DNA from: Chlorokybus atmophyticus
Lineage: Eukaryota > Plantae > Mesostigma and Chlorokybus algae
Direction of reading: 5' to 3'
Assembly: GCA_009103225.1 (NCBI GenBank)
Contig: RHPI01002368.1
Location: 896,974 to 960,973, forward strand
DNA: 64,000 bases
Position numbers and translations under genes: made by a program. Positions within the stretch are counted from its first letter, which is position 1, and each line of letters starts with the position of its first letter. Positions 44,943-63,843 of this stretch are shown one piece after another. The notes below the pieces were generated by a model. That model was not told the origin of the DNA. It worked only from the letters and a program-made list of their open reading frames with translations, and made no database searches.

Positions 44943-47457
44943 GATGCCAACTCACTGCGCAACCGCGCAGGAGGCCAAAAACGCCCTCACCCCCCTCCGC
45001 AGACCACCCTCACAACCCTAACCTGCTCAGCAACCCCTTCAACGCCAAGTACTCTGCCCTCCCCGCCCTCCTCAGCTGCTCCTCAGCTACTGCTGTCAGC
45101 TGCATAGACAGCGTCCCACGTCACCGCTCGTCACACTTACAACACTCCTGGGACTGCGCCCTATGACAGCTCACACCCTGACAGTCTCGGCCACGCCGCC
45201 GGCGACAACCACAACGCCACAACCGTCCCTGCCGCCGCTGCTTGCTTATGCCTGGCTGGAGGCTACGCGTTAGTTTAACGGAGATTTCACGCGCAACGTG
45301 CGCAGCTAAGTTCGACCGCTCCGAGGGATGTTAACTGGTCTTCTGCGGCGTTCCCAGTCAAGTAACCAGGCCCCAAGCGCTGGCAGCGGTTACGAGTACG
45401 GCCAGCCCTGTGGACGTATAACGGCCGGGAGTCACGGTCTGTACCGGGGAATACGACCGAGGTCGGTTACGGCCGCGAACGCGAAACTTGAGGTTTCGCA
45501 TGAGTTGCAACCGACGTGGAATTTCGCGGATTTCCGCCCCGACGCGATTTTGCGTTGAAAATTGGTGGCCCCCCAATCCGACGCGGCCCCGTCGCCGTGA
45601 ACCCGGTTAGCGTGTAACCGCGGTTGATAGGGACAAGTGAGCGACTTCTAAGGTGTCACATGATGTGTGGCTCACATCATGCGCATGTCCAACACAGTTC
45701 ACGTAAGATTCAGTCTCCGGGGCGAATGAAATGCCCTCAGATAAACGCCCTAACTTCACAAATTCAGTTGGCATCAGAAAGCTTACAAAGCTTTTCATGA
45801 ACTATTCCACTCGTAAATATAATAACAATCTATAAAGCACAAATATCAATTGATTGTGACGTCCGGGTTTTCATGCTTGAGAGTGTAATACTTAGTGTTT
45901 TTATGCATTAACGCAATGCTGATTACATATATTACAGCAAATTATATGTTTAACTTGTAAAGTATTAACGTGACTTCATTAACGTATACGGACTTTAGAG
46001 TACTGAACCGCATTCACGCTGAGTTTGTGCAGCAGATGGGTGTTTATAATACAAAGAGCTTTAACAACGTTTGAAGCCTATGCTTCAAGGCAAAAAGATG
46101 CACATGTACAACAAGTTGATTGCGATGTCGCATAAATAGAATTTTAATATTATCTTTAATTCATGATGTTGTATGACTTCGACACGGCAATTGTTAGTGT
46201 AAAGCTGCATAGCTACATGCTTATTTAACTTATCAACACCACTGCATTGCTGCTTTTAGCTTTTCAATGAGTAAATGGCCTTGGAACATGTCAACCCAAA
46301 CAGTGCTGCATGTGCAAGGGTAGTGGCATTAACTTTCATCACCATCACACCATGCGAGATCTCGAGGTCAGTGATCTTGTGTTCAGTGAATCATAAAGGC
46401 TGAAATCCTGGACCTGATGCGGGCGATATAGGCGATGCTGCTGATACTGCTGTGACGCGACGGGTCTTGTTATTGACGTGGCTGCAGCTTCTGCGTTAGA
46501 TGGCAGTCTGCTTGGTTAGCTAGGTCCTTGCTGTGGTCAGGATCAAACCGAGAGAACGTCCAACACGAAATTTCGATATATCCCGCTTATCCATACTGAG
46601 GCTGATGTGGCGCGCTGGCATTTGTTCCTGCAAATCGTGCGCGCGCCTGGATCAATCATTGTGCAGATTCCGCAGCGTTTATTGTGAAATTCCCGGAAAT
46701 TAGCCCCGGCAGTTCACGGGAAAGGCTGTTTTGTGGTTTGGGGGCGTTCGCCACGCGCGCCCCGCATTTCGCAGTGGAAAGTGGATAAACATGATAAGAA
46801 CAAGCCTACAAAGCTGCTGCCTTCAACGCCACGGGGACCTATTGGTAGCCCCTGCAATAGGGCTGTCCTTATCCACTTTGCCCCAACAGCCAACAGCCAA
46901 TGTAGTAGGTAGCACCTACTCTAACCTGCAATACAATGTGTGGACATTTTCGCTTATCATATTTTGCTGTTTTAATGCTTATGACGAATACACTGTTATA
47001 TTGCAAAATTCACAACATAATAGCCGTTGTATTGCTGTCTTAATAAGGACTCATTTTCGTTTATAATATGTTGAAGTTAGCAGTGGTTCTAGCAACACGT
47101 AGACATGCCGTCATGCGTACTAAAGCAGACGGTGATAATGCCAGTAAAACGTTGTAACATGACATTTTGCGGCAATCCATTTAACTTGTAAAATCACGAG
47201 AGACATGCATAATCGCTGCATAATGTGCAAGACTATGCTGTATATATTATTGTTTGAACCAATCGCAAGGAACTTAAGCACCAGTATGAGATTGCCCAAT
47301 TGAAGGAAAAACTTTTGTCCTTATTATGCTATATTTGGTTGCTTACGATAAAGTAAACAAAGTTCAACAAGCAGGACACATTAACCCCGCGCATGTGTAA
47401 TGCCTATGCAGATGGCCACAAGGGCAGCAACTTGCGTTTTAAATCCGCAATGGTGGC

Positions 47458-50400
47458 TGTAACGGAGTGCTATCGCTATGCGGTTCCTTGCCCTTGTTTG
47501 GTTAAAAATAAGGGTCCCAACGGATAATAAACAGCCAATTGAGCCGTATTAGGGTCTTTATGGCCTTAATGTAGTGTTAGCTTATCGCTAACACTGATAT
47601 CGATGTGAGACTCATGTCTCACATCGATATCAGCATGGCGGCGCTGCCTAACGCAGCGGCCGCCATAGCCAGAGCATCTTTTGCTCTGGCAGCTGCCCCG
47701 GCAGCGGCGGCGGCGGTGTGGGCCGGCGGTGTGGCTGGTGGTGGTGGTGGTGTAGGGGATTAAAGGGGGCGGTAGCCCCCCCCCCGCCCCNACCCCATGT
47801 ACACAAGAGTTGTTACCTTGGACATGAGCACCATGTCTTCCACAGCATTGCCAACTCCATGGTTCAGTTTGCGGTCGAAAGCCTTGACCGTCCGCACAAC
47901 ACGCCCTCCACTCCTGGTCAACACACGCATCACTACATGCATCAGCACATACCCACACACAACTCCAAACACCAGCACATAGTCACATCCATCCGCTCTC
48001 TCACAACACAGACACACACACGCACCTCACTATCAACTTGGTGTATCTCAACTCCGCGTCGCGATCGTCCGAGGTGACGAAGAAACGCGTCCATGGGATT
48101 TCCTTCAACAAATCAACAATGAATTTCTCCGTTGAGTCCTCCACCTCCTGCCCATAGACGAAGTCAAGTGTCAATACAATGCCATTGGCAACGGGTGCGC
48201 ATGTGTACCTGCATGTGTCAATGCTTGATGGATGGTTGTTTCCCCCCCCCCCCGCCCCCTCTTACATTTGGTATCAGATCAAGGGGAGGTAAGGGGCCTC
48301 TGGGGCGGCGGCGGCGGCGCAGAGGCGGCAGCGGCGGCACTGAACAGTCGGCGGCGGCGGCAGCAGTAGCAGCCAACGCCACCCATGTGTTAGGGTGGGT
48401 AGCGGTGTTAGTTGTTGTTGTTGTGTTGTTGTGTATAACGCTGCTGCTGGTGTAGCCTAGCTAGCCTTGCTTACTTGCTAGCCTAGCTTAACCTAGCCTA
48501 GCTTGCTATTGTGAAGGGGAGGCGGCCACTCAGGCAGCCCACCCCCGAGCATTGCATCCCAGCACATCACTTAGTAACTCACATTACTATCAATACGTGT
48601 GTGCTTGTGGGATAGCCACCGCATGGATTCGCGGGGGTGTGAAGGGTTTTATGCGCGCGCACGCATTCGCACGCGTGCTCTAACCCTTGAGGGCAGTCCG
48701 GTGGCAAAATTGGATGTCGTGACCGCCAGTCAGTGCGGTGGGGCCAACAGACTTGTTCTGTTCGGCTAAGCAAACTCCATTCACACTTGGCACTCCTCGT
48801 GTCAATTGCAATTGTGAATTAAATGGAGTTGTACAAAGTGAAAACTTTAAGCTGTTGTAGCTTGCAAAACGTCGCGTGGAAACGCGTGCGGTTTGTTTGC
48901 ACGCAAGCGTCTTGTGGAGTGGTGTTGGGTAGTCCCTTCACGGGCTGTTACCCAAGTTAAAAACCTTGCAATCATCGAGAAAGAAACAACAAATATTGAC
49001 ACTTTTTGAGTGCACAACTCGTGTGCTTGTGCACTTGCAAACTTCTTGACGGCTTGTCTCCTTGGGCAGATGTCTTACCAAGGAGAGGAGGGTGGGATGT
49101 ATCCCGTTCCTAAGGATTCATCCTATGAGCCATTAAGTGAAGCACTCGGACACGAGTGGTAGTTGCAGTGTCAGTGATGAGGAAGAAGCCAAGTCCAAGA
49201 GTGGTGAAGCTTCTTCCAACAAGTCCTTTCATGACCAATAACATATGGACGCTCAGAGCATCATCGGGGCGGCCATAGCAAAGTACGCATCAGAGCGTGA
49301 GGCTCTTCTTGCTGTACACCCCCAACTTCGCAAGGAATTGTGGGATGAGTGGGCGCAGTCAGTCCGTAACGCATATGAGACGGACTTCGCGGCACTCCCG
49401 TGCGCAAGCAAGAAGATGGTGACTCGCATGATCGAGCACGAGTTGACGCGTAATGTACCGCAACTCATGCGCACAGATGCAGCAGTGGCTGCTCTTATGG
49501 CCACTTATGACAAATCAGGCCCGTATCCAGACCAGAGGATGGCGTTCGCAGCTCTTACCTCATTGACGGTAGAGACTCAGAACCTTCTCAGCTGCTGGTG
49601 CTGAGGGTGCGTTACCAGTAAAAGGTGAAATCTAGTTGAAAGTTAAGATTGGTAGTTATCAAGCCAATTTAACTTTCGTCGTAGTACCCACTGACATAGC
49701 TAGTATGATGTGGTATTCGGCCAGATGGGCAACATCAAATGTAAACAGTAAAGAAGGGGCGTAAGCGCATCACTTTGTCTGTGCAGGGGTTGCATAGCTT
49801 AGAATGCAAGCAAACAGACCCTGCGTTACTTACGGCGCTTCAAGTGAAGCGTGCGTTTCGTAAAAACACCTGCTTTTCTAGTGCACTTAACGTCGAATGA
49901 TGATGTAGTGCCTGGCAATACAGAAGGTGTGGCGAACATCATTGAAAAGTTTTTGGATGTGTTCTTTGATGAGTTGCCGGGCTTGCCCCCTTATCGAGGT
50001 GTCGGACACACAATACCTTTGATTCATGACAGTGAGCCTCCATTTCGGCCTATGTATAGGTTGAGCCCTCGTGAGAGGGGGAAATTGGAAACACAGATGA
50101 AAGAGTTATTGGAAAAGGGATTGATTGAACCAAGTCTTCACCCTTTGGCGCACCCAACTTGTTTATTATGAAGAAGAATGGGAAGTTGCGCATGTGTGTG
50201 AATACCGTGCTTTAAACGAGGTCACGGTAAAGAACAGGTACTCGTTGCTAAGGATTGTTGATGTGTGCGGACGGTAAAAGGGTGCTGGCAGACATCTTTA
50301 CCGCTTCGGCCCTGGTTTTCCGCCTACTCAAGTTTTCAGTGCTCACGTGTGGGGCCTTGCTAGCCCTTAATGAGGATATTGAAACCTCAGTGGGGGGGGG

Positions 50401-53265: not shown

Positions 53266-56136
53266 CTATCTTGCCATTTGACGCTTACGAAGAAACTCCT
53301 TTTCTCTTCGTTGCGCAAGTGATGTTCTTGTGTCAGGTCCAATCCTGTCCCGAACCTGCTCCAACCACATATCTCGTGCCTCATATGGAAACGCGAGCTC
53401 GTACAGGAAAGGCACATTGACATTGTCAGGACCGTGCGCGAACTGGCGGGTGTTATCAGGCAAAAGGTTCAGCAACGGCACCCTCCCTATGACCATGGAA
53501 TTGGCTGAGTACGAAGATATCTTTGCGCTCTGCAGAATACCGGCACACTGGGAAGACAACAGTGTCATGTTAGTGCATTTCGACATGTAAGCATGAGCAT
53601 AAGCGTAGTGTCCTTCATTGCGTGGCCGACATCAGGTACATGCGTGTGTAGTAGCGTGCAAGAACATGTGTGTCTGTGTATGTGTGCGCGTGCGTGTGGA
53701 CAACCCCTGCGTCTGCATATGTCTGTGTGAGCCTGTATGTCTGCACATGCAAGTGCAGAGGCATGAGTGTGCGTGCCTGTGCGTTGGTGTGTATGTGTTT
53801 GCATGTGCAAGCGTGCATATGTCAGTGTCTGCGTGTCTGCGTATTTATGTGTCTGTGCGCGACCCCATGTACACAAGAGTTGTTACCTTGGACATGAGCA
53901 CCATGTCTTCCACAGCATTGCCAACTCCATGGTTCAGTTTGCGGTCGAAAGCCTTGACCGTCCGCACAACACGCCCTCCACTCCTGGTCAACACACGCAT
54001 CACTACATGCATCAGCACATACCCACACACAACTCCAAACACCAGCACATAGTCACATCCATCCGCTCTCTCACAACACAGACACACACACGCACCTCAC
54101 TATCAACTTGGTGTATCTCAACTCCGCGTCGCGATCGTCCGAGGTGACGAAGAAACGCGTCCATGGGATTTCCTTCAACAAATCAACAATGAATTTCTCC
54201 GTTGAGTCCTCCACCTCCTGCCCATAGACGAAGTCAAGTGTCAATACAATGCCATTGGCAACGGGTGCGCATGTGTACCTGCATGTGTCAATGCTTGATG
54301 GATGGTTGTTTGTGCATGTGTGCGTGTGTGTGCATGTAGGCGCGTGCGGGAGTGAGTGTGACTGTGCGTGCCTGTGTGCTTGTGCGTACTGGTCTGAAAC
54401 TGTGTACACATGTGCGTGTGCTCGCGCACCTGCACACACATTCACGCACAGGTCCATGGTATAATTGCGTTTGTGTCTGTGCGCATCGCAACTGTATCAC
54501 TCACACACACTTCCCCCCTCCTCTCACCTGCAACTGATGAAACGACAGCTCCACGCTCCTCTCCGCCCACGTCTCATTCACATTCCTCACTTTGTCTCCC
54601 CTCCTCACGTGCAGCGCCACACTCCCCTTCAGCACCTCCTTCATCCCCTCCACCTTCTTCTCCACCTCGTCTCTGAGCTGCAGTCTGGACGCCAGCATGA
54701 GGTAGGTGGCCTTGGTTTGCGAGAGGGAGATGCGTTGCTTGTAGAGGTGTTGGGATTGGTAGAGGCGCTCGGGTAAGGCGCGGCCGGAGGCGGAGGAGGA
54801 AGAGAGAGGGAGGAGGGAGAGGGGGGAGAGAGGGTCTAAGACGCCGAGTCGGGACTGTGAGGAGGGAGAGAGAGTGAGTGAGTGAGGGGGGATACATGTG
54901 GGTATGTGGACGTGTGCGTGAGTGTGATGCGCACACGCGGGGATACGCGTATACGCGCACGTGCAGGCATGCACCCACACGTGCACGCACACATGCACAC
55001 ACACATGTACACGTCCGTGTACATGTATCTGTGCGCACTTGCATGTGTACACTCAGAGACACACACACACGCGAGTTAGCATACGCTAGTATGATGAGCA
55101 TCATCTCACGACTCCTTACATAGAACGCTTCCGTGTCGTTTGCTGAGACCACCGTCATCCCCCTTTCCCCCGACCCCGCGAACATGCTCTCCCAGGGCGG
55201 GAAGCGGAACCCGCGCGTCAACCAAGGGACCAGGGACGGGCGGCAAAGGGACCAGGAGACGGTCCAGGCGCCGAACTGCCGGGGGGCGAGAGAGGGTGAG
55301 TGGATGAGTGTGAATGTGTGGGTGAGTGTGAGGAGGGGNNNNNNNNNNNNNNNNNNNNNNNNNNNNNNNNNNNNNNNNNNNNNNNNNNNNNNNNNNNNNN
55401 NNNNNNNNNNNNNNNNNNNNNNNNNNNNNNNNNNNNNNNNNNNNNNNNNNNNNNNNNNNNNNNNNNNNNNNNNNNNNNNNNNNNNNNNNNNNNNNNNNNN
55501 NNNNNNNNNNNNNNNNNNNNNNNNNNNNNNNNNNNNNNNNNNNNNNNNNNNNNNNNNNNNNNNNNNNNNNNNNNNNNNNNNNNNNNNNNNNNNNNNNNNN
55601 NNNNNNNNNNNNNNNNNNNNNNNNNNNNNNNNNNNNNNNNNNNNNNNNNNNNNNNNNNNNNNNNNNNNNNNNNNNNNNNNNNNNNNNNNNNNNNNNNNNN
55701 NNNNNNNNNNNNNNNNNNNNNNNNNNNNNNNNTGAGAATGCTTGCTGTAGAGCAAGTTTCGTCTCCTGCAGGTGGTGCACCTGCCTGGCGGTGATGATGA
55801 TGTCATCAACATACACGAGCAGCCAGACCTTGTTGTCTGCATGGATGAAGAGCCCAGGGTCTGCAGAAGATGCGGTGAAGCCAAGTGCCTCCAGCTCCTT
55901 GGTGAGCTTGATATGCCACATACGCGGTGCCTGTCGCAGCCCGTACAGTGCCTTGATCAGCTTGCACGCTGTGCCTCTCTCCCCTTCTTCATATCCAGGT
56001 GGTTGCTCGATGAAGATGTCCTCCTCCAGCTCTCCGTAGAGGAAGGCAGTCTTCACATCCAGGTGATGCAGCTTAAGGTCCTCAGCAGCAACCACAGCTA
56101 GCAGTGCACGGAAGGTGGTATGCTTACTTGCAGGTG

Positions 56137-56191
<55 letters not shown>

Positions 56192-57262
56192 GGTGAGAGC
56201 CTGTGTTTGCACGTGTTACTGCGGGTGTGAGTGTGTATGTGCACTTGCGTATACGTCTGCATGAGTGTGCGTGCGTGCGTGCGTGCGTGTGCGAGTGTAT
56301 ATGCATGTGTGTGCGCGTGCGCGTGCGCGTGCACGTGCATCCATGCGTGCGTGTGTGTGCGCGCGTTTGCGTGTGCGTGCGTGCGTGCGCGCTTGTACAT
56401 GCGTGCATGTGTGCGTGCATGTGTATAACAATTGAATCACCACACCCACACTTACCACATCAGTGAGGCGGTCGCCAAGGCCAGCGAACCTCGACCACGC
56501 ATCATTCCCTTTGATCACAATAGCTGGCGAGTCCCACTTGAAGCACGCCGCGATTGGCTCCTCTCCAATCCCATTCTCAGAATTCTCCACAAAGAAAAGG
56601 TCCCTAGCATCGCTCCCAGCCGTGTTAGGGAACGCAAACGGGCCGGACCAGGGACTCCCCTTTGGCATGATGACAGCCTCTCCAGAATAGGTCTCCTTGA
56701 AAAAACTGCCCTGAGGACCTTCTGTCATGGCGATATCGCAGGTTTGGTATATGCAATTGGCTAACTGAGTATGGGAGTCGAGTGATGCGCATCTCTCGGT
56801 CAGGTCCTTGACCAGGCCCGCGCTGAGGATGTATCCTGTACCGAGTTTTAGGGAAGCGGGAATGGGACTTCCGGGGTTGGGATGGCATTCGGCACCAGAG
56901 TTGGTAATATCGACTGCGTGGCAGTGGTTGTCGCTGCAGCGGCTCCCATCGATATCGCAGCTGCGAGTGACTCTGCACACAACGAGCAACAAGATCAACA
57001 CATGCACATACACACATACGCGCGTGTGTGCGCGCGCGCATGCACAAGGTTGGACCTGTGTACCTTGCAAAGGGGCTTGCGGGCTCATGTGGCAGGCCAA
57101 TAAAGTGGCTTTTGCTTGAATCGAGCGAGGCGAGGTAGCGCACTATGTTGCGAATGATGAAGTACACATCATCATCACCCACAATAAACCACCTGTCATT
57201 GTCAGCAAGTTTAGTCACACACACAAGCAATGGCCTTAGTCACACGCAACCACACACCAACA

Positions 57263-57299
<37 letters not shown>

Positions 57300-58183
57300 T
57301 TACTTGAATTGGCCTCCTTGCATGCGCGTGGCATGTACAAGCGCTTCTCCAACACTTTGCTCACTTATCAGATGCGGTGCGCGCTTCAGCCAAGTGTCCA
57401 TCGCAGTATGCACGTTTGTACTTGTCGTGTTTTGTTTCAACATAACCACAACAATATCGTCTTCAGTGAGAAGATTAGCAGCAAAATCACTTCCTTTGTT
57501 GTCCAAAGGCCACTTTTCCTGCTGCTGAAGGGTCGATATCTTCGGTCCAGCCGTCGATATCGGCCTCCCGTGCCTGCAGAGCTCCACATAATCCTGCGAC
57601 ATCGGATCCATCCCCAAGCACAGCGTCGATATCCTTCTCGGGAACTCGGCTCTCGGCGATATCTCCACCGCACCCGATATCGCCGCGAGCTGTCGCCGAT
57701 GCTGCTGCTTGGAGGGATGGTCTCCGAGCGACGCCTTGAGAAGAGAGGCTTGCAGAGTCAGCGCGATAGAGAGGAGAATGCCGGATATCAATGTGATGCG
57801 AAGCAAACGGTGACGCTTGGCTTGGCTGGAGGGACTTGTGGAGGTCAACCAGGACTTGCGGGTGCGGTGAGTCACGCTGAGTGGCGTCTGCATGTGTGGC
57901 AATGTCACAACATTGTGCGCATGCGCGTGCTCGTGCATGTGCATCTGAGTACTTCTGTGCGTGCGCACAAACTCTGTATACACACATGCCTGTGTGCACG
58001 CGCAGGAGAGACGCGTGCGCATGTGCACTTGCGTGTGTTTTTATGTAGGCGCACACAGAAATGTGCTGGTGTGTGTGCGTGTGTAGGCACACACAAACAG
58101 CCCAACTACTATATCACATCACTTACTGGTGGGTTGCTGTTGGGTGCGCGCGGTGTTGTGGCAACATAGAGTGGTGGCAGCAT
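53266..58183 (-). CDS. Type II membrane, two-domain glycosyltransferase: GT31/Fringe (DUF604)-like plus GT-B fucosyltransferase-like, 9 exons, 770 aa
   Basis: Exons 58183-58127, 57887-57304, 57234-57064, 56972-56456, 55275-55120, 54854-54528, 54217-54096, 53983-53887 and 53547-53266 total 2313 nt, are all GT-AG and stay in frame. TM RITLISGILLSIALTLQASLL; WFIVGDDDVYF; GTGYILSAGLV; GLGDRLTDV|FGAWTVSW; HVRRGDK; FFVTSDD; DMVLMSK|CAGILQSAKISSYS. Confidence 0.85.
55339..55732. other. Assembly gap (N) in intron 4 of the glycosyltransferase
   Basis: Run of N. Confidence 1.
55733..56132 (-). mobile_element. Ty1/Copia reverse transcriptase fragment in an intron
   Basis: HLDVKTAFLYGELEEDIFIEQPPGY..ALYGLRQAPRMW..LLVYVDDIII. 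Bounded by a gap and a poly-G run. Confidence 0.9.
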
Positions 58184-58459: not shown

Positions 58460-59153
<694 letters not shown>

Positions 59154-60777: not shown

Positions 60778-63133
60778 TCACTGGATGGCCAGCATCGAGG
60801 CCGTGCGTGCGGCGGCCTGCTCTTGCGCCGCAGACACAACATCCACAGGAAGCAACTTCATGAACTGTTTCAACAGCTCGCCAGCCGCCTGTCGCAAGTA
60901 CTCGTATAAACAACTGGTACGTGTGTATGTAGTTGCAAGATGAAGTACACCCACATTAGAGAGTAACTACGAGATGACAGCAAGTGTGTGAAATGAAAGT
61001 ACAGTCACCTTGAGGGACTTGAGGCTGAAGTCTTTGAACTCCTTCCTGTACAAATGACAAACACACAATGCACCGAGTGAGAGGATGCTTGCATAAAGAC
61101 AAAATGGGCATGCATGACTCGTCCACTCATCAACCATAGCAAGCAAGCACACAGCTTCATGAACTTGAGCACTTGTCTCATTAGCAAGTACGTATGTATG
61201 TATGTATATATAATAGTAAGCGTACTCTTGAGTGAATGAAGCGGTGCCAAGGTTCTCAAAGTACTTGGAAAAATCCACCTGTATGACATGAGAAGCAGCT
61301 GGTTAGTACACAGCATTAGACAAGTGTAACTATGTCTATTCAACATGCCCCATTACAATTCCAACCTGGTCTAGATATTCCAAAATCGATTTGCTCAGCT
61401 CTGTAGCGCGCTCATAAGCCTCCTTTTCCTCCAAATAAGCCGCCGCACTTAATCATGATCAATGTTGATTGTCATAAGTGCTGTGGAGACACTGTGCAAT
61501 GTCAGTGATGTGCTTACCTATCGAGGTTGGAGCGGATATCAAGCGGCAGCGATGTCAACCTCTTCAACTCAGTCTTCAAAGTGCCCCACTGCCCTTCTGT
61601 TGGTTTTTACACAACCACAATCAATCAATGTCATGACATATTAACGCACATGTGATGTGTGGCTTTGCACGCGCGTGTGCGTGCAAGCCCACACATCACA
61701 TGCATGTGTGTGCGTGTGCACGGGTATGCCCACACCCACACATGCACATGTGTGTGCTTGTGGGTGTGACACCCGTGTGCACGCAAAGAGTGACAATGCA
61801 TACCTGTGGCGATCTGTTGGAGGGATGCGAGCCTCTCCTGCACTTCTACCAGCGGCACAACATAAAAGTAGAGTGGCTTTGACGGCTTGGGCCTCGTCCA
61901 AAAGGACGGAACCTGAGTTGAAACACACGCGTAAACATGTGTACGTGTGCGACCTATGCACACAACCTCACGTACAAGAGAGCATGCCAGAACGCACGTG
62001 TGCACACAACCACACATCTGTCCACACATGTGTACGCATGTCATGAGTTGATACGCACACACCACACACCACGCTATGCACAGGAAGATAGTGTTGTTGT
62101 TACCAGTGAGAAGGCGACAGTGGCAGCAGTGAGAGCGAGACCGATCACGAGTCTGCGCGTGACAACTCCACCCTCGTCGCCACTGCTCTCCGCATCGCCT
62201 GCGCACGTAACAGAAGCAAAGAGTGTGTGGGCAGAGGCAAGGCCAGCCAAGGGCGACAATGAGTGAAGAGAGAACAGCAGTCTCGTGTGCTTGTTGTGTG
62301 CGTGTAGATAACCATGCTTGCATGGTTAGGTTGTCAACATTGGCCAGGCTCACCTGGCTTGGCAGCATCCATTTCTGAGGGACCTCTAACCATCATCAGC
62401 TCTGCTTCGGATACCCAACCTCCCGCCCTCGCTGCAGCACACAGACACTGTTACTAACACACACACACACACACACACATGCACAGATACACATACACAT
62501 AAGAACAACACATGCGCACGCACACATCAGCAATGCTACTCGCGTACTTGTCTTCTCCTTTGGGACGGAGAAGAGTGTCTCTCGGTACTGATACGGGGTG
62601 TCGATGCGGGGGGAAGGGCGTTGTGATTGTTGTTGTTTGCCACCTTGTTGTTGTTGGAGGGCGGCGGCGAGCTTAGCACGCAACTCGGTGGCCTCAGCCT
62701 GAATTGCGTGTGTGTGTGTGTGTGCGCGTGCTCACACATGTGCACATGCATGTGCGCGACACAGACACACATGCACACCTACGCACACACTTGCATTGCA
62801 AAAGCATGCATGCGCATGCCTCGCCAGCATCGCACACACATTGTTGATCACCACCAGCACAATGCCACATACCCAAATGCTTACCTGCAGTGCGGCAAAG
62901 TCCTTCTCAGACGTAAACTGACCACTGCTGCTGTCATCCTTCGTATCCTTCTTGACACCATCAACGGTATTGTTGACATCCTTAGCGCTCTCGCCGCCGC
63001 CTGACTGCGCCCTAACCGCCCCTATCCTCGCCACGCCAGTTCTCCGCCGGCGGCGAGGAGCAGATACCGTTAAGCTGAGGGGTGTGCCTGACAAAACGGC
63101 GGAGGAGGAGGCCAACGACATCACCGCCGCCAT
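60778..63133 (-). CDS. Plastid-targeted protein of unknown function with one TM segment and a helical C-terminal domain, 9 exons
   Basis: Transit peptide MAAVMSLASSSAVLSG..RRRRRTGVARIGAVRAQ. Spliced core: TRRLVIGLALTAATVAFSL|VPSFWTRPKPSKPLYFYVVPL..|..SAAAYL..ILEYLDQ|VDFSKYFE..|KEFKDFSLKSLK|AAGELLKQFMKLLP..*. All splice phases are consistent. Confidence 0.8.
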
Positions 63134-63150
63134 TGTCGCTTAAGCAGCGT

Positions 63151-63275
63151 GCCACGTGGCTGCATGTGAAGTGGGATGCAAAGCTTGTGCGTCTTGTGCG
63201 CTTGTGCGCTTGTACCTCTTGTGCGCTTCTGCCTTCGTGCGTCTTGTGCCCTGGCGCACTTGGTGTCACGTGACA
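63151..63275. promoter_or_regulatory. Two G-box palindromes between divergent start codons
   Basis: GCCACGTGGC (63151-63160) and TGTCACGTGACA (63264-63275). Confidence 0.55.
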
Positions 63276-63351
63276 TACCTTGCCAGGCCAGGCCAGGCCA
63301 GGCCGTGCTAGGCCGAGCCAGGCCGTGTTGTACCAGGCTGAGAGGTAGACC

Positions 63352-63843
63352 ATGTTCCCGTTTGGGGTTCACAGCGGCGTTTCATCTCAGCCGGATCCCA
63401 GATCACGCCGCCACCTGTACCAGAACAGCGCCTTCCCAGGACCCGAACCAGGGCCATGGCCTGGGCCTGGTCCAGGATCAGGTCCCAACCCCTATCCGAA
63501 GGCCAGTCCCAGACCCGTCCCTGCCTCTACAACTGAGTCCGGGGCGAGTCCTAGACCTATTCCTTTCGACGATGAGGACCTCAACGGCTCCAACCCCACG
63601 GGTCCTGGTGCGGATCCAGGACTAAGAGGGTCCCGGCCTCGACCCAGAGTGGTGCGACCCCGGAATGGGTCCGGGACAGAAGGGTGCGCACAAGCATGTC
63701 AGCACAATTTTGTGTGGGTGTGACATGTGTTTGGGTGCAACACACAGCATGCAACTCGCAGGCAACAACAACAATACGACAAGCAACACCAGAAGCGTGA
63801 GTTGGGAGCTCTGTCTCCAGAGAAGCCTGCACTGGATGAGAAG
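63352..63843 (+). CDS. First two exons of a Pro/Gly-rich protein continuing beyond the window
   Basis: Exon 63352-63683 (MFPFGV..PGPEPGPWPGPGPG..) splices GT-AG in phase 2 to 63762-63843 (QQQQYDKQHQKRELGALSPEKPALDEK), followed by a GTACAC donor. Confidence 0.55.

Follow-up and report, generated by a model that had tools for sequence, protein, structure and literature searches.

A probable fused glycosyltransferase gene in the streptophyte alga Chlorokybus atmophyticus, with a Fringe-like half and a fucosyltransferase-like half

The stretch of DNA analysed here (the window) covers 64,000 nucleotides of contig RHPI01002368.1 of the alga Chlorokybus atmophyticus, and the subject of this report is a gene on its minus strand, at positions 58183-53266. 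The gene probably encodes a real fused glycosyltransferase, possibly bifunctional and predicted to reside in the Golgi. Judging from its motifs and profile matches, the protein would consist of a GT31/Fringe-like domain (domain 1) behind a membrane anchor, followed by a domain of the fucosyltransferase superfamily (domain 2).

The gene and its public model

The gene was resolved into nine exons. All introns run from GT to AG, their phases are compatible, and the spliced coding sequence reads in a single frame through 2271 nucleotides, which is 756 codons and a stop (exons of 57, 584, 129, 517, 156, 327, 122, 97 and 282 nucleotides). An initial annotation of this DNA had proposed nine exons that splice in frame, and all nine were found where it placed them with GT-AG borders, eight of them matching a public protein, called P0001 here. 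Its figure of 770 amino acids for the protein has to be corrected, as the exons sum to 756, 14 fewer. The nine exons and the long fourth intron are as follows.

58127..58183, minus strand: exon 1, a candidate and optional; 19 codons (MLPPLY...) with an ATG, a GT donor and phase 0; not in P0001
57304..57887, minus strand: exon 2; a basic tail for the cytoplasmic side, the membrane-spanning anchor, the stem region and the opening part of the GT31-like domain (DIVVVMLKQNTTS...DTWLKR); equals P0001 residues 3-196 exactly
57064..57192, minus strand: exon 3; WFIVGDDDVYF, the predicted metal-binding DxD segment of the GT31/Fringe-like domain
56456..56972, minus strand: exon 4 (517 nucleotides); Cys-rich insert, GTGYILSAGLV, putative end of domain 1, linker, AIVIK strand and GLGDRLTDV; equals P0001 residues 241-412 exactly
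55276..56455, minus strand: intron 4; CACG-rich low complexity, a 51-nucleotide homopolymer, a Copia RVT_2 fragment and a gap of N
55120..55275, minus strand: exon 5; FGAWTVSWSLCRPSLVPW..., predicted to carry on the helix and strand at the N-terminal end of the fucosyltransferase-like domain; equals P0001 residues 413-464 exactly
54528..54854, minus strand: exon 6; Ser/Pro/Leu-rich insert (encoded at 54793-54834), then motif I, HVRRGDK; equals P0001 residues 465-573
54096..54217, minus strand: exon 7; motif II, FFVTSDD; equals P0001 residues 574-613
53887..53983, minus strand: exon 8; first half of motif III (GNAVEDMVLMSK); equals P0001 residues 615-646
53266..53547, minus strand: exon 9; the remaining half of motif III (CAGILQSAKISSYSA), then the C-terminal tail, ending in the stop at 53268-53266; equals P0001 residues 647-739

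P0001 is a protein of 739 amino acids from Chlorokybus atmophyticus (eukprot entry jgi/Chlat1/413/Chrsp10S00055). The record is unnamed and carries neither a precomputed Pfam domain nor an assigned function. The translations of exons 2-9 are identical to successive stretches of this protein, including the junction at which GLGDRLTDV of exon 4 meets FGAW of exon 5. In P0001 the start codon is the ATG at 57893-57891, shortly ahead of exon 2, and not that of exon 1; the choice between these two starts changes 17 residues in the cytoplasmic tail. All residue numbers given here are those of P0001, and the sequence comparisons covered its residues 1-470 and 486-739.

Two sequencing runs of Chlorokybus were found to contain 0.74 and 0.40 of the words sampled from positions 56456-57887. 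The higher share is close to the roughly 0.81 expected of spliced exons alone, the run type, RNA, being a guess.

A single hydrophobic segment was found at about residues 29-52, behind a basic tail, with a Kyte-Doolittle maximum of 1.93 at residue 33. This lone segment fits a type II anchor, in keeping with the type II membrane protein that the initial annotation had described, and the three N-glycosylation sequons and 12 cysteines of the protein fit a lumenal location. The motifs quoted in that annotation were all located on the protein. In domain 1 the DDD lies at residues 203-205 (within WFIVGDDDVYF, 198-208) and GTGYILS at 284-290. In domain 2 the order is GLGDRLTDVFGAWTVSWSLCRPSLVPW (the GLGD...LVPW stretch) at 404-430, HVRRGD at 546-551, FFVTSDD at 595-601 and DMVLMSKC at 640-647.

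The C-terminal half resembles the fucosyltransferase superfamily

Pfam was used to place the C-terminal half among known families. The FUT8_N_cat profile matched it at 21.5 bits (cut-off 27.6, E 1.2e-4), along the catalytic part of the profile (positions 334-461 of 499), and Glyco_transf_11, the GT11 profile, matched the same stretch at 15.2 bits (cut-off 23.9, E 0.013). Both matches take in motif I, and no other fucosyltransferase profile matched. The Pfam profiles NodZ, XG_FTase and O-FucT (PF10250) gave no match on the protein at E <= 1. Among neighbours found with a protein language model (Atlas), domain 2 lay beside XG_FTase, NodZ, FUT8, O-FucT and GT11 clusters at 0.92-0.96, with O-FucT present in a minority of members and in only some of these clusters.

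A search of residues 486-739 against 7.3 gigabases of plasmids with tblastn gave as its top match an open reading frame (ORF) of Phocaeicola (E 0.6), which itself exceeds the Pfam GT11 cut-off with 29.9 bits. Compared directly, domain 2 and this GT11-like ORF gave a pairwise E of 7e-9 with motifs I, II and III collinear, and a Smith-Waterman score of 93, against 32 +/- 5 for shuffled sequences, none of which reached it in 500 trials. In motif I, HVRRGD pairs with HIRLGD of the GT11-like protein and with HVRHGN of NodZ; in motif II, FFVTSDD pairs with FILFSDG of the GT11-like protein; and in motif III, GNAVEDMVLMSKCAGILQSAKISSYSA pairs with its GNAFADMWAISKTKAVIASD--STFSA. The part of motif III encoded by exon 8, GNAVEDMVLMSK, pairs with GNAFADMWAISK of the same protein, and exon 9 aligns with it as well.

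Motifs I-III are those of the superfamily of alpha1,2-, alpha1,6- and O-fucosyltransferases, motif I being implicated in the binding of guanosine diphosphate (GDP)-fucose, and GT11 enzymes have a fourth motif at the N-terminal side (PMC8439653). FUT8, NodZ, AtFUT1 and POFUT1/2 share a common fold and the use of GDP-fucose as their donor (PMC7014118, PMC3180450). From these comparisons it is reasonably supported that domain 2, at about residues 395-739, is a NodZ-sized member of the GT11/GT23/GT37/POFUT fucosyltransferase superfamily with four family motifs. The earlier reading of the C-terminal half as a fucosyltransferase is supported by the alignment of motifs I-III and of the N-terminal motif, but it reaches no Pfam cut-off.

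Domain 2 might belong to this superfamily and still transfer another sugar, such as the rhamnose handled by certain plant enzymes of the O-FucT-like clan, and its product would then not be fucosylated. The family within the superfamily is ambiguous, with Pfam favouring FUT8/GT11 and the Atlas spanning XG_FTase, NodZ, O-FucT and GT11, and no close characterised relative was found. However, HVRRGD with both arginines is the form seen in GDP-fucose-binding GT11 and GT23 enzymes (PMC8439653, PMC7014118), and the best alignable protein passes the GT11 cut-off. A different donor sugar seems quite improbable.

Domain 2 very probably begins in exon 4, ahead of an assembly gap

The start of domain 2 was sought by comparison with NodZ. 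Four annotated NodZ genes from rhizobial plasmids, fetched with a short peptide as bait, served as references; NodZ was picked after the motif had been seen, which makes this evidence modest. With hhalign, residues 401-430 aligned on NodZ 11-40 in 30 ungapped columns that cross the junction of exons 4 and 5 (E 0.13), pairing RFAGLGDRLTDVFGAWTVSWSLCRPSLVPW with RRTGFGDCLWSLASAWSYAQRTGRTLVVDW of NodZ. The Smith-Waterman scores of this N-terminal match were 41-45, against 28 +/- 4.6 for shuffled sequences, and were reached by 6-35 of 2000 shuffles. MAFFT put AIVIK...AGLGDRL in register with FVIS..TGFGDCL of NodZ and PVLS..PGLANCM of the GT11-like protein. The spacings from the N-terminal motif to motif I, from I to II and from II to III are 142, 49 and 45 residues, where NodZ has about 161, 45 and 50.

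It is very probable that domain 2 already has its first strand and its first motif (GxGD) in exon 4. The initial annotation had put the end of domain 1 and the GLGDRL start of domain 2 in this same exon, and the NodZ and GT11-like alignments agree with it. Because the NodZ alignment runs ungapped over the exon 4/5 junction, it speaks against both an exon hidden there and a split into two genes.

A run of N at 55339-55732 falls entirely within the intron (56455-55276). Exon 4 closes on a complete codon (phase 0) at its GTAAGT donor, which stands 723 nucleotides ahead of the gap, and exon 5 opens in phase 0 after an AG, 63 nucleotides beyond it. The gap is thus inside the intron with phase 0 at both flanks, and its length therefore cannot alter the reading frame. 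A Copia reverse-transcriptase fragment occupies 55733-56125 on the strand of the gene, open for 131 codons, truncated at its 5' end and running into the gap. Against Pfam RVT_2 it scores E 1.9e-35, covering positions 63-192 of the 244 in the profile, and it is the sole copy of this reverse transcriptase in the window. Should more of the element exist, the gap conceals it, and the real intron 4 may therefore be much longer than estimated.

Directly 5' of the Copia fragment stands a 51-nucleotide G homopolymer at 56138-56188, which is poly-C on the strand of the gene. Together the homopolymer, the truncated Copia fragment and the gap suggest that a retroelement has entered intron 4 recently or that the assembly had trouble making the join. 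The introns otherwise consist mostly of imperfect low-complexity repeats of CACG/CACA type (56190-56455 and most other introns), for example an array of 34/68-nucleotide period at 56276-56424, and these repeats therefore give rise to long spurious open frames on both strands.

Exons 5-9 have neither a start codon nor a membrane anchor, and there is no stop close behind the donor site of exon 4; this argues for one gene rather than two. The fusion could also be an artefact of assembly or annotation, in which the gap joins parts of two genes (possibly a paralogue) or hides an exon, and the real protein would then differ from P0001. The gap and the truncated Copia fragment do stand exactly between the two halves, and the homopolymer abutting the fragment resembles a troubled assembly region. 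Yet exon 4 already has the first strand of domain 2 and its GLGD, and the architecture would stand even with exons 5-9 misplaced. The junction peptide lies ungapped on NodZ 11-40, with no room for a missing exon, and strand, phase and canonical splice sites agree throughout, with exons 5-9 bringing no start or anchor of their own. We regard such an artefact as decidedly unlikely.

The N-terminal half resembles GT31/Fringe enzymes more distantly

The Pfam Fringe profile (PF02434) matched the protein at 17.0 bits, against a cut-off of 21, with an E of 0.004 and over residues 174-232 only; exon 3 by itself gave 15.2 bits (E 0.014). The best PDB match, which is not significant, was to the DDD segment of the GT31 domain of CHSY3 (E 0.6 over 35 residues), where WFMRADDDVYI...SLNSSKPLYLG of CHSY3 is aligned with WFIVGDDDVYF...SLDSSKSHFIG. 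A DxD metal-binding motif behind a hydrophobic strand is present in domain 1 (WFIVGDDDVYF). The language-model neighbours of exon 4 were hexosyltransferase, Galactosyl_T and Fringe clusters at 0.93-0.95 and DUF604 clusters at 0.81. GTGYILS is intact, and no significant alignment spans the putative catalytic-acid region downstream, LDSHTQLANC. In GT31 enzymes the catalytic-acid segment carries the motif (E/D)D..G.C.

These matches weakly indicate that domain 1, at about residues 140-340, is a very divergent GT31/Fringe-like domain, which is not the same as a proven member of GT31. Its assignment is weaker than that of domain 2 to the fucosyltransferase superfamily. Of the GT31/Fringe hallmarks claimed for this half in the initial annotation, the DDD and GTGY.LS motifs are intact, whereas the Pfam Fringe score is below its cut-off and LDSHTQLANC is atypical.

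The very divergent GT31-like half could be degenerate and serve in acceptor binding, folding or localisation, which would make the protein a fucosyltransferase with a single activity, or the converse could hold. The 17-bit Fringe match confined to the DDD segment, the want of a significant PDB match, the Cys-rich insert and the departure of LDSHTQLANC from the GT31 motif would all suit a protein with one active domain. But the DDD, the hydrophobic strand before it and GTGY.LS are all intact, and the language-model neighbours of exon 4 are clusters of GT31 type. That only one domain is catalytic we consider unlikely, if less so than the artefact and the other donor.

Relatives and surroundings

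Relatives of the protein were sought in several collections. When 1.84 billion representative proteins were searched with exon 4 by phmmer, only P0001 (100% identity over the exon) and two low-complexity matches came back. Word searches with P0001 regions 486-739 and 130-470 returned the protein itself or nothing, and scans of viral, prokaryotic and metagenome contigs showed no related locus. An exact-identity look-up of contigs encoding P0001 had no entry for it. These searches speak to close relatives, and it is of close relatives that they came back blank. The NCBIfam library had nothing relevant on the protein, and sequence searches of the PDB gave no significant match for either half.

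Within the window, the flanking long ORFs at 46731-49604 and 61005-63625 have no Pfam match at E <= 0.001, and no neighbouring glycan-pathway gene was seen beside the gene. About 280 bp upstream of candidate exon 1 lies a perfect (CT)n microsatellite at 58463-59153, with 345.5 copies over 691 bp and 100% matches. This array, unusually long and flawless, may be real promoter-proximal DNA or a product of assembly.

The initial annotation had presented the architecture as not known to be described in the green lineage. In limited searches of the accessible literature and databases no account came up of a GT31-like and a GT11/GT23-like domain in one fused protein, but the gene model itself is already public, with no function attached. 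As matters stand this is an uncharacterised gene, lineage-restricted as far as the comparisons made here indicate, and its domain assignments are built on weak matches.

Comparison with known two-domain enzymes

Bifunctional two-domain glycosyltransferases are already known: PgtA is one, and the chondroitin synthases, whose N-terminal domain is GT31, are others. In Dictyostelium and Toxoplasma, PgtA is a beta1,3-galactosyltransferase and alpha1,2-fucosyltransferase that acts on Skp1 (PMC8439653). Like the Chlorokybus protein, it has an N-terminal GT-A hexosyltransferase followed by a C-terminal domain of the fucosyltransferase superfamily in one polypeptide, the GT-A fold and the hexosyltransferase activity being predicted in the case of Chlorokybus. 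It makes a fucose-galactose (Fuc-Gal) disaccharide in two steps and is the closest functional analogy, a likeness of possible working and not of membership. PgtA differs in being cytoplasmic and soluble and in its domains, which are GT2 and GT74, and no sequence relationship between it and the Chlorokybus protein was detected.

CHSY1 and CHSY3 are likewise two-domain type II glycosyltransferases of the Golgi with a GT31/Fringe-like N-terminal domain. Their second domain, however, is a GT-A domain of GT7 and they build a repeating polymer, and the match to CHSY3 has an E of 0.6 over 35 residues.

NodZ and FUT8 (GT23) and the GT11 enzymes resemble domain 2 in that motifs I-III and GxG[DN] follow one another in matching order with similar spacing, and NodZ also in size. 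Domain 2 differs from all of these in its scores, which stay under the cut-offs, in the Ser/Pro/Leu-rich insert between the N-terminal motif and motif I, and in standing behind another glycosyltransferase. It is also without the coiled-coil and SH3 parts that FUT8 has.

The Fringe/B3GLCT/C1GALT1 group and the Fringe-related DUF604 proteins of plants resemble domain 1 in their type II arrangement, in the hydrophobic strand with DDD and in GxGY.LS. From the Fringe group domain 1 is set apart by the Cys-rich insert that separates its DDD from its GxG motif, by the atypical putative catalytic-acid segment and by its 17 bits, and nothing seen in it supports an action on O-fucose.

Proposed working and its standing

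What has been observed is the structure of the gene, its motifs, the weak family matches and the public model. How the domains fold, whether both are active, which donor sugars they use, in what order they act, on which acceptor and at what place in the cell, we infer from the sequence, and the following outline is to be read in that sense. The anchor would hold the protein in the Golgi with both catalytic domains in the lumen. The GT31-like domain, with a metal at its DDD, would add a beta-linked hexose or N-acetylhexosamine from a uridine diphosphate sugar. Domain 2 would move fucose from GDP-fucose, held by R548/R549 of HVRRGD, to the same growing glycan. In this way a fucosylated disaccharide unit may be built on a glycoprotein or polysaccharide of the wall or mucilage without release of the intermediate.

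The initial annotation had leaned on the pairing of POFUT and Fringe, in which O-fucose is added and then extended. This order is not favoured, as the protein has no O-FucT match at E <= 1 and its second domain is nearest to the GT23/GT11 type. Because domain 2 is nearest GT23/GT11 and has no Pfam O-FucT match, a PgtA-like order, in which the hexose is added and then capped with fucose, is no less likely than POFUT followed by Fringe. TbFUT1, an enzyme of GT11, favours Gal-beta1,3-GlcNAc (galactose-beta1,3-N-acetylglucosamine) acceptors (PMC8439653).

Several observations weigh against this outline and should be kept in view. Every family match of both halves lies under its curated cut-off. 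Both hhalign matches to NodZ are non-significant when taken alone (E 0.13 and 0.14), and NodZ is absent from the results of the PDB sequence search. LDSHTQLANC, at the position of the GT31 catalytic acid, is atypical. Single-sequence AlphaFold models were unusable for residues 130-470 as well as for residues 486-739, with predicted local distance difference test (pLDDT) values of 33.4 and 35.6 respectively. Some members of the GT-B superfamily use donors other than GDP-fucose, for example the plant GT106 rhamnosyltransferases. An assembly gap separates the two halves, and the intron in which it lies carries a retrotransposon fragment. The runs that contain the N-terminal exons are guessed to be RNA, and the searches by sequence brought to light no relative in which conservation of the fusion could be seen.

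With these points set beside the evidence for it, we lean somewhat towards the view that this is one real gene of Chlorokybus atmophyticus, that its product, some 740-756 amino acids long, is a type II membrane protein with two glycosyltransferase domains, and that the protein works as proposed. A bolder version can be put forward tentatively and is in our estimate rather doubtful. The protein may be a Golgi enzyme that needs no partner to assemble a beta-linked disaccharide with a fucose cap, of the type Fuc-alpha1,2-Gal-beta1,3, on glycans of the wall or mucilage, and so be a lumenal and independently evolved counterpart of PgtA. It might then be one of a lineage-specific set of Fringe-like fusions with different second glycosyltransferases.

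Significance

Two-domain glycosyltransferases that make a defined disaccharide are rare, and they are informative because each ties together two steps of a glycan pathway with no need of genetics. Chlorokybus belongs to one of the earliest-diverging streptophyte lineages. If the proposed reading is true, the fusion of a GT31-like and a fucosyltransferase-like domain would indicate that a basal streptophyte makes a specific fucosylated structure in its wall or mucilage, and it would help in approaching what the poorly understood Fringe-related proteins of plants do.

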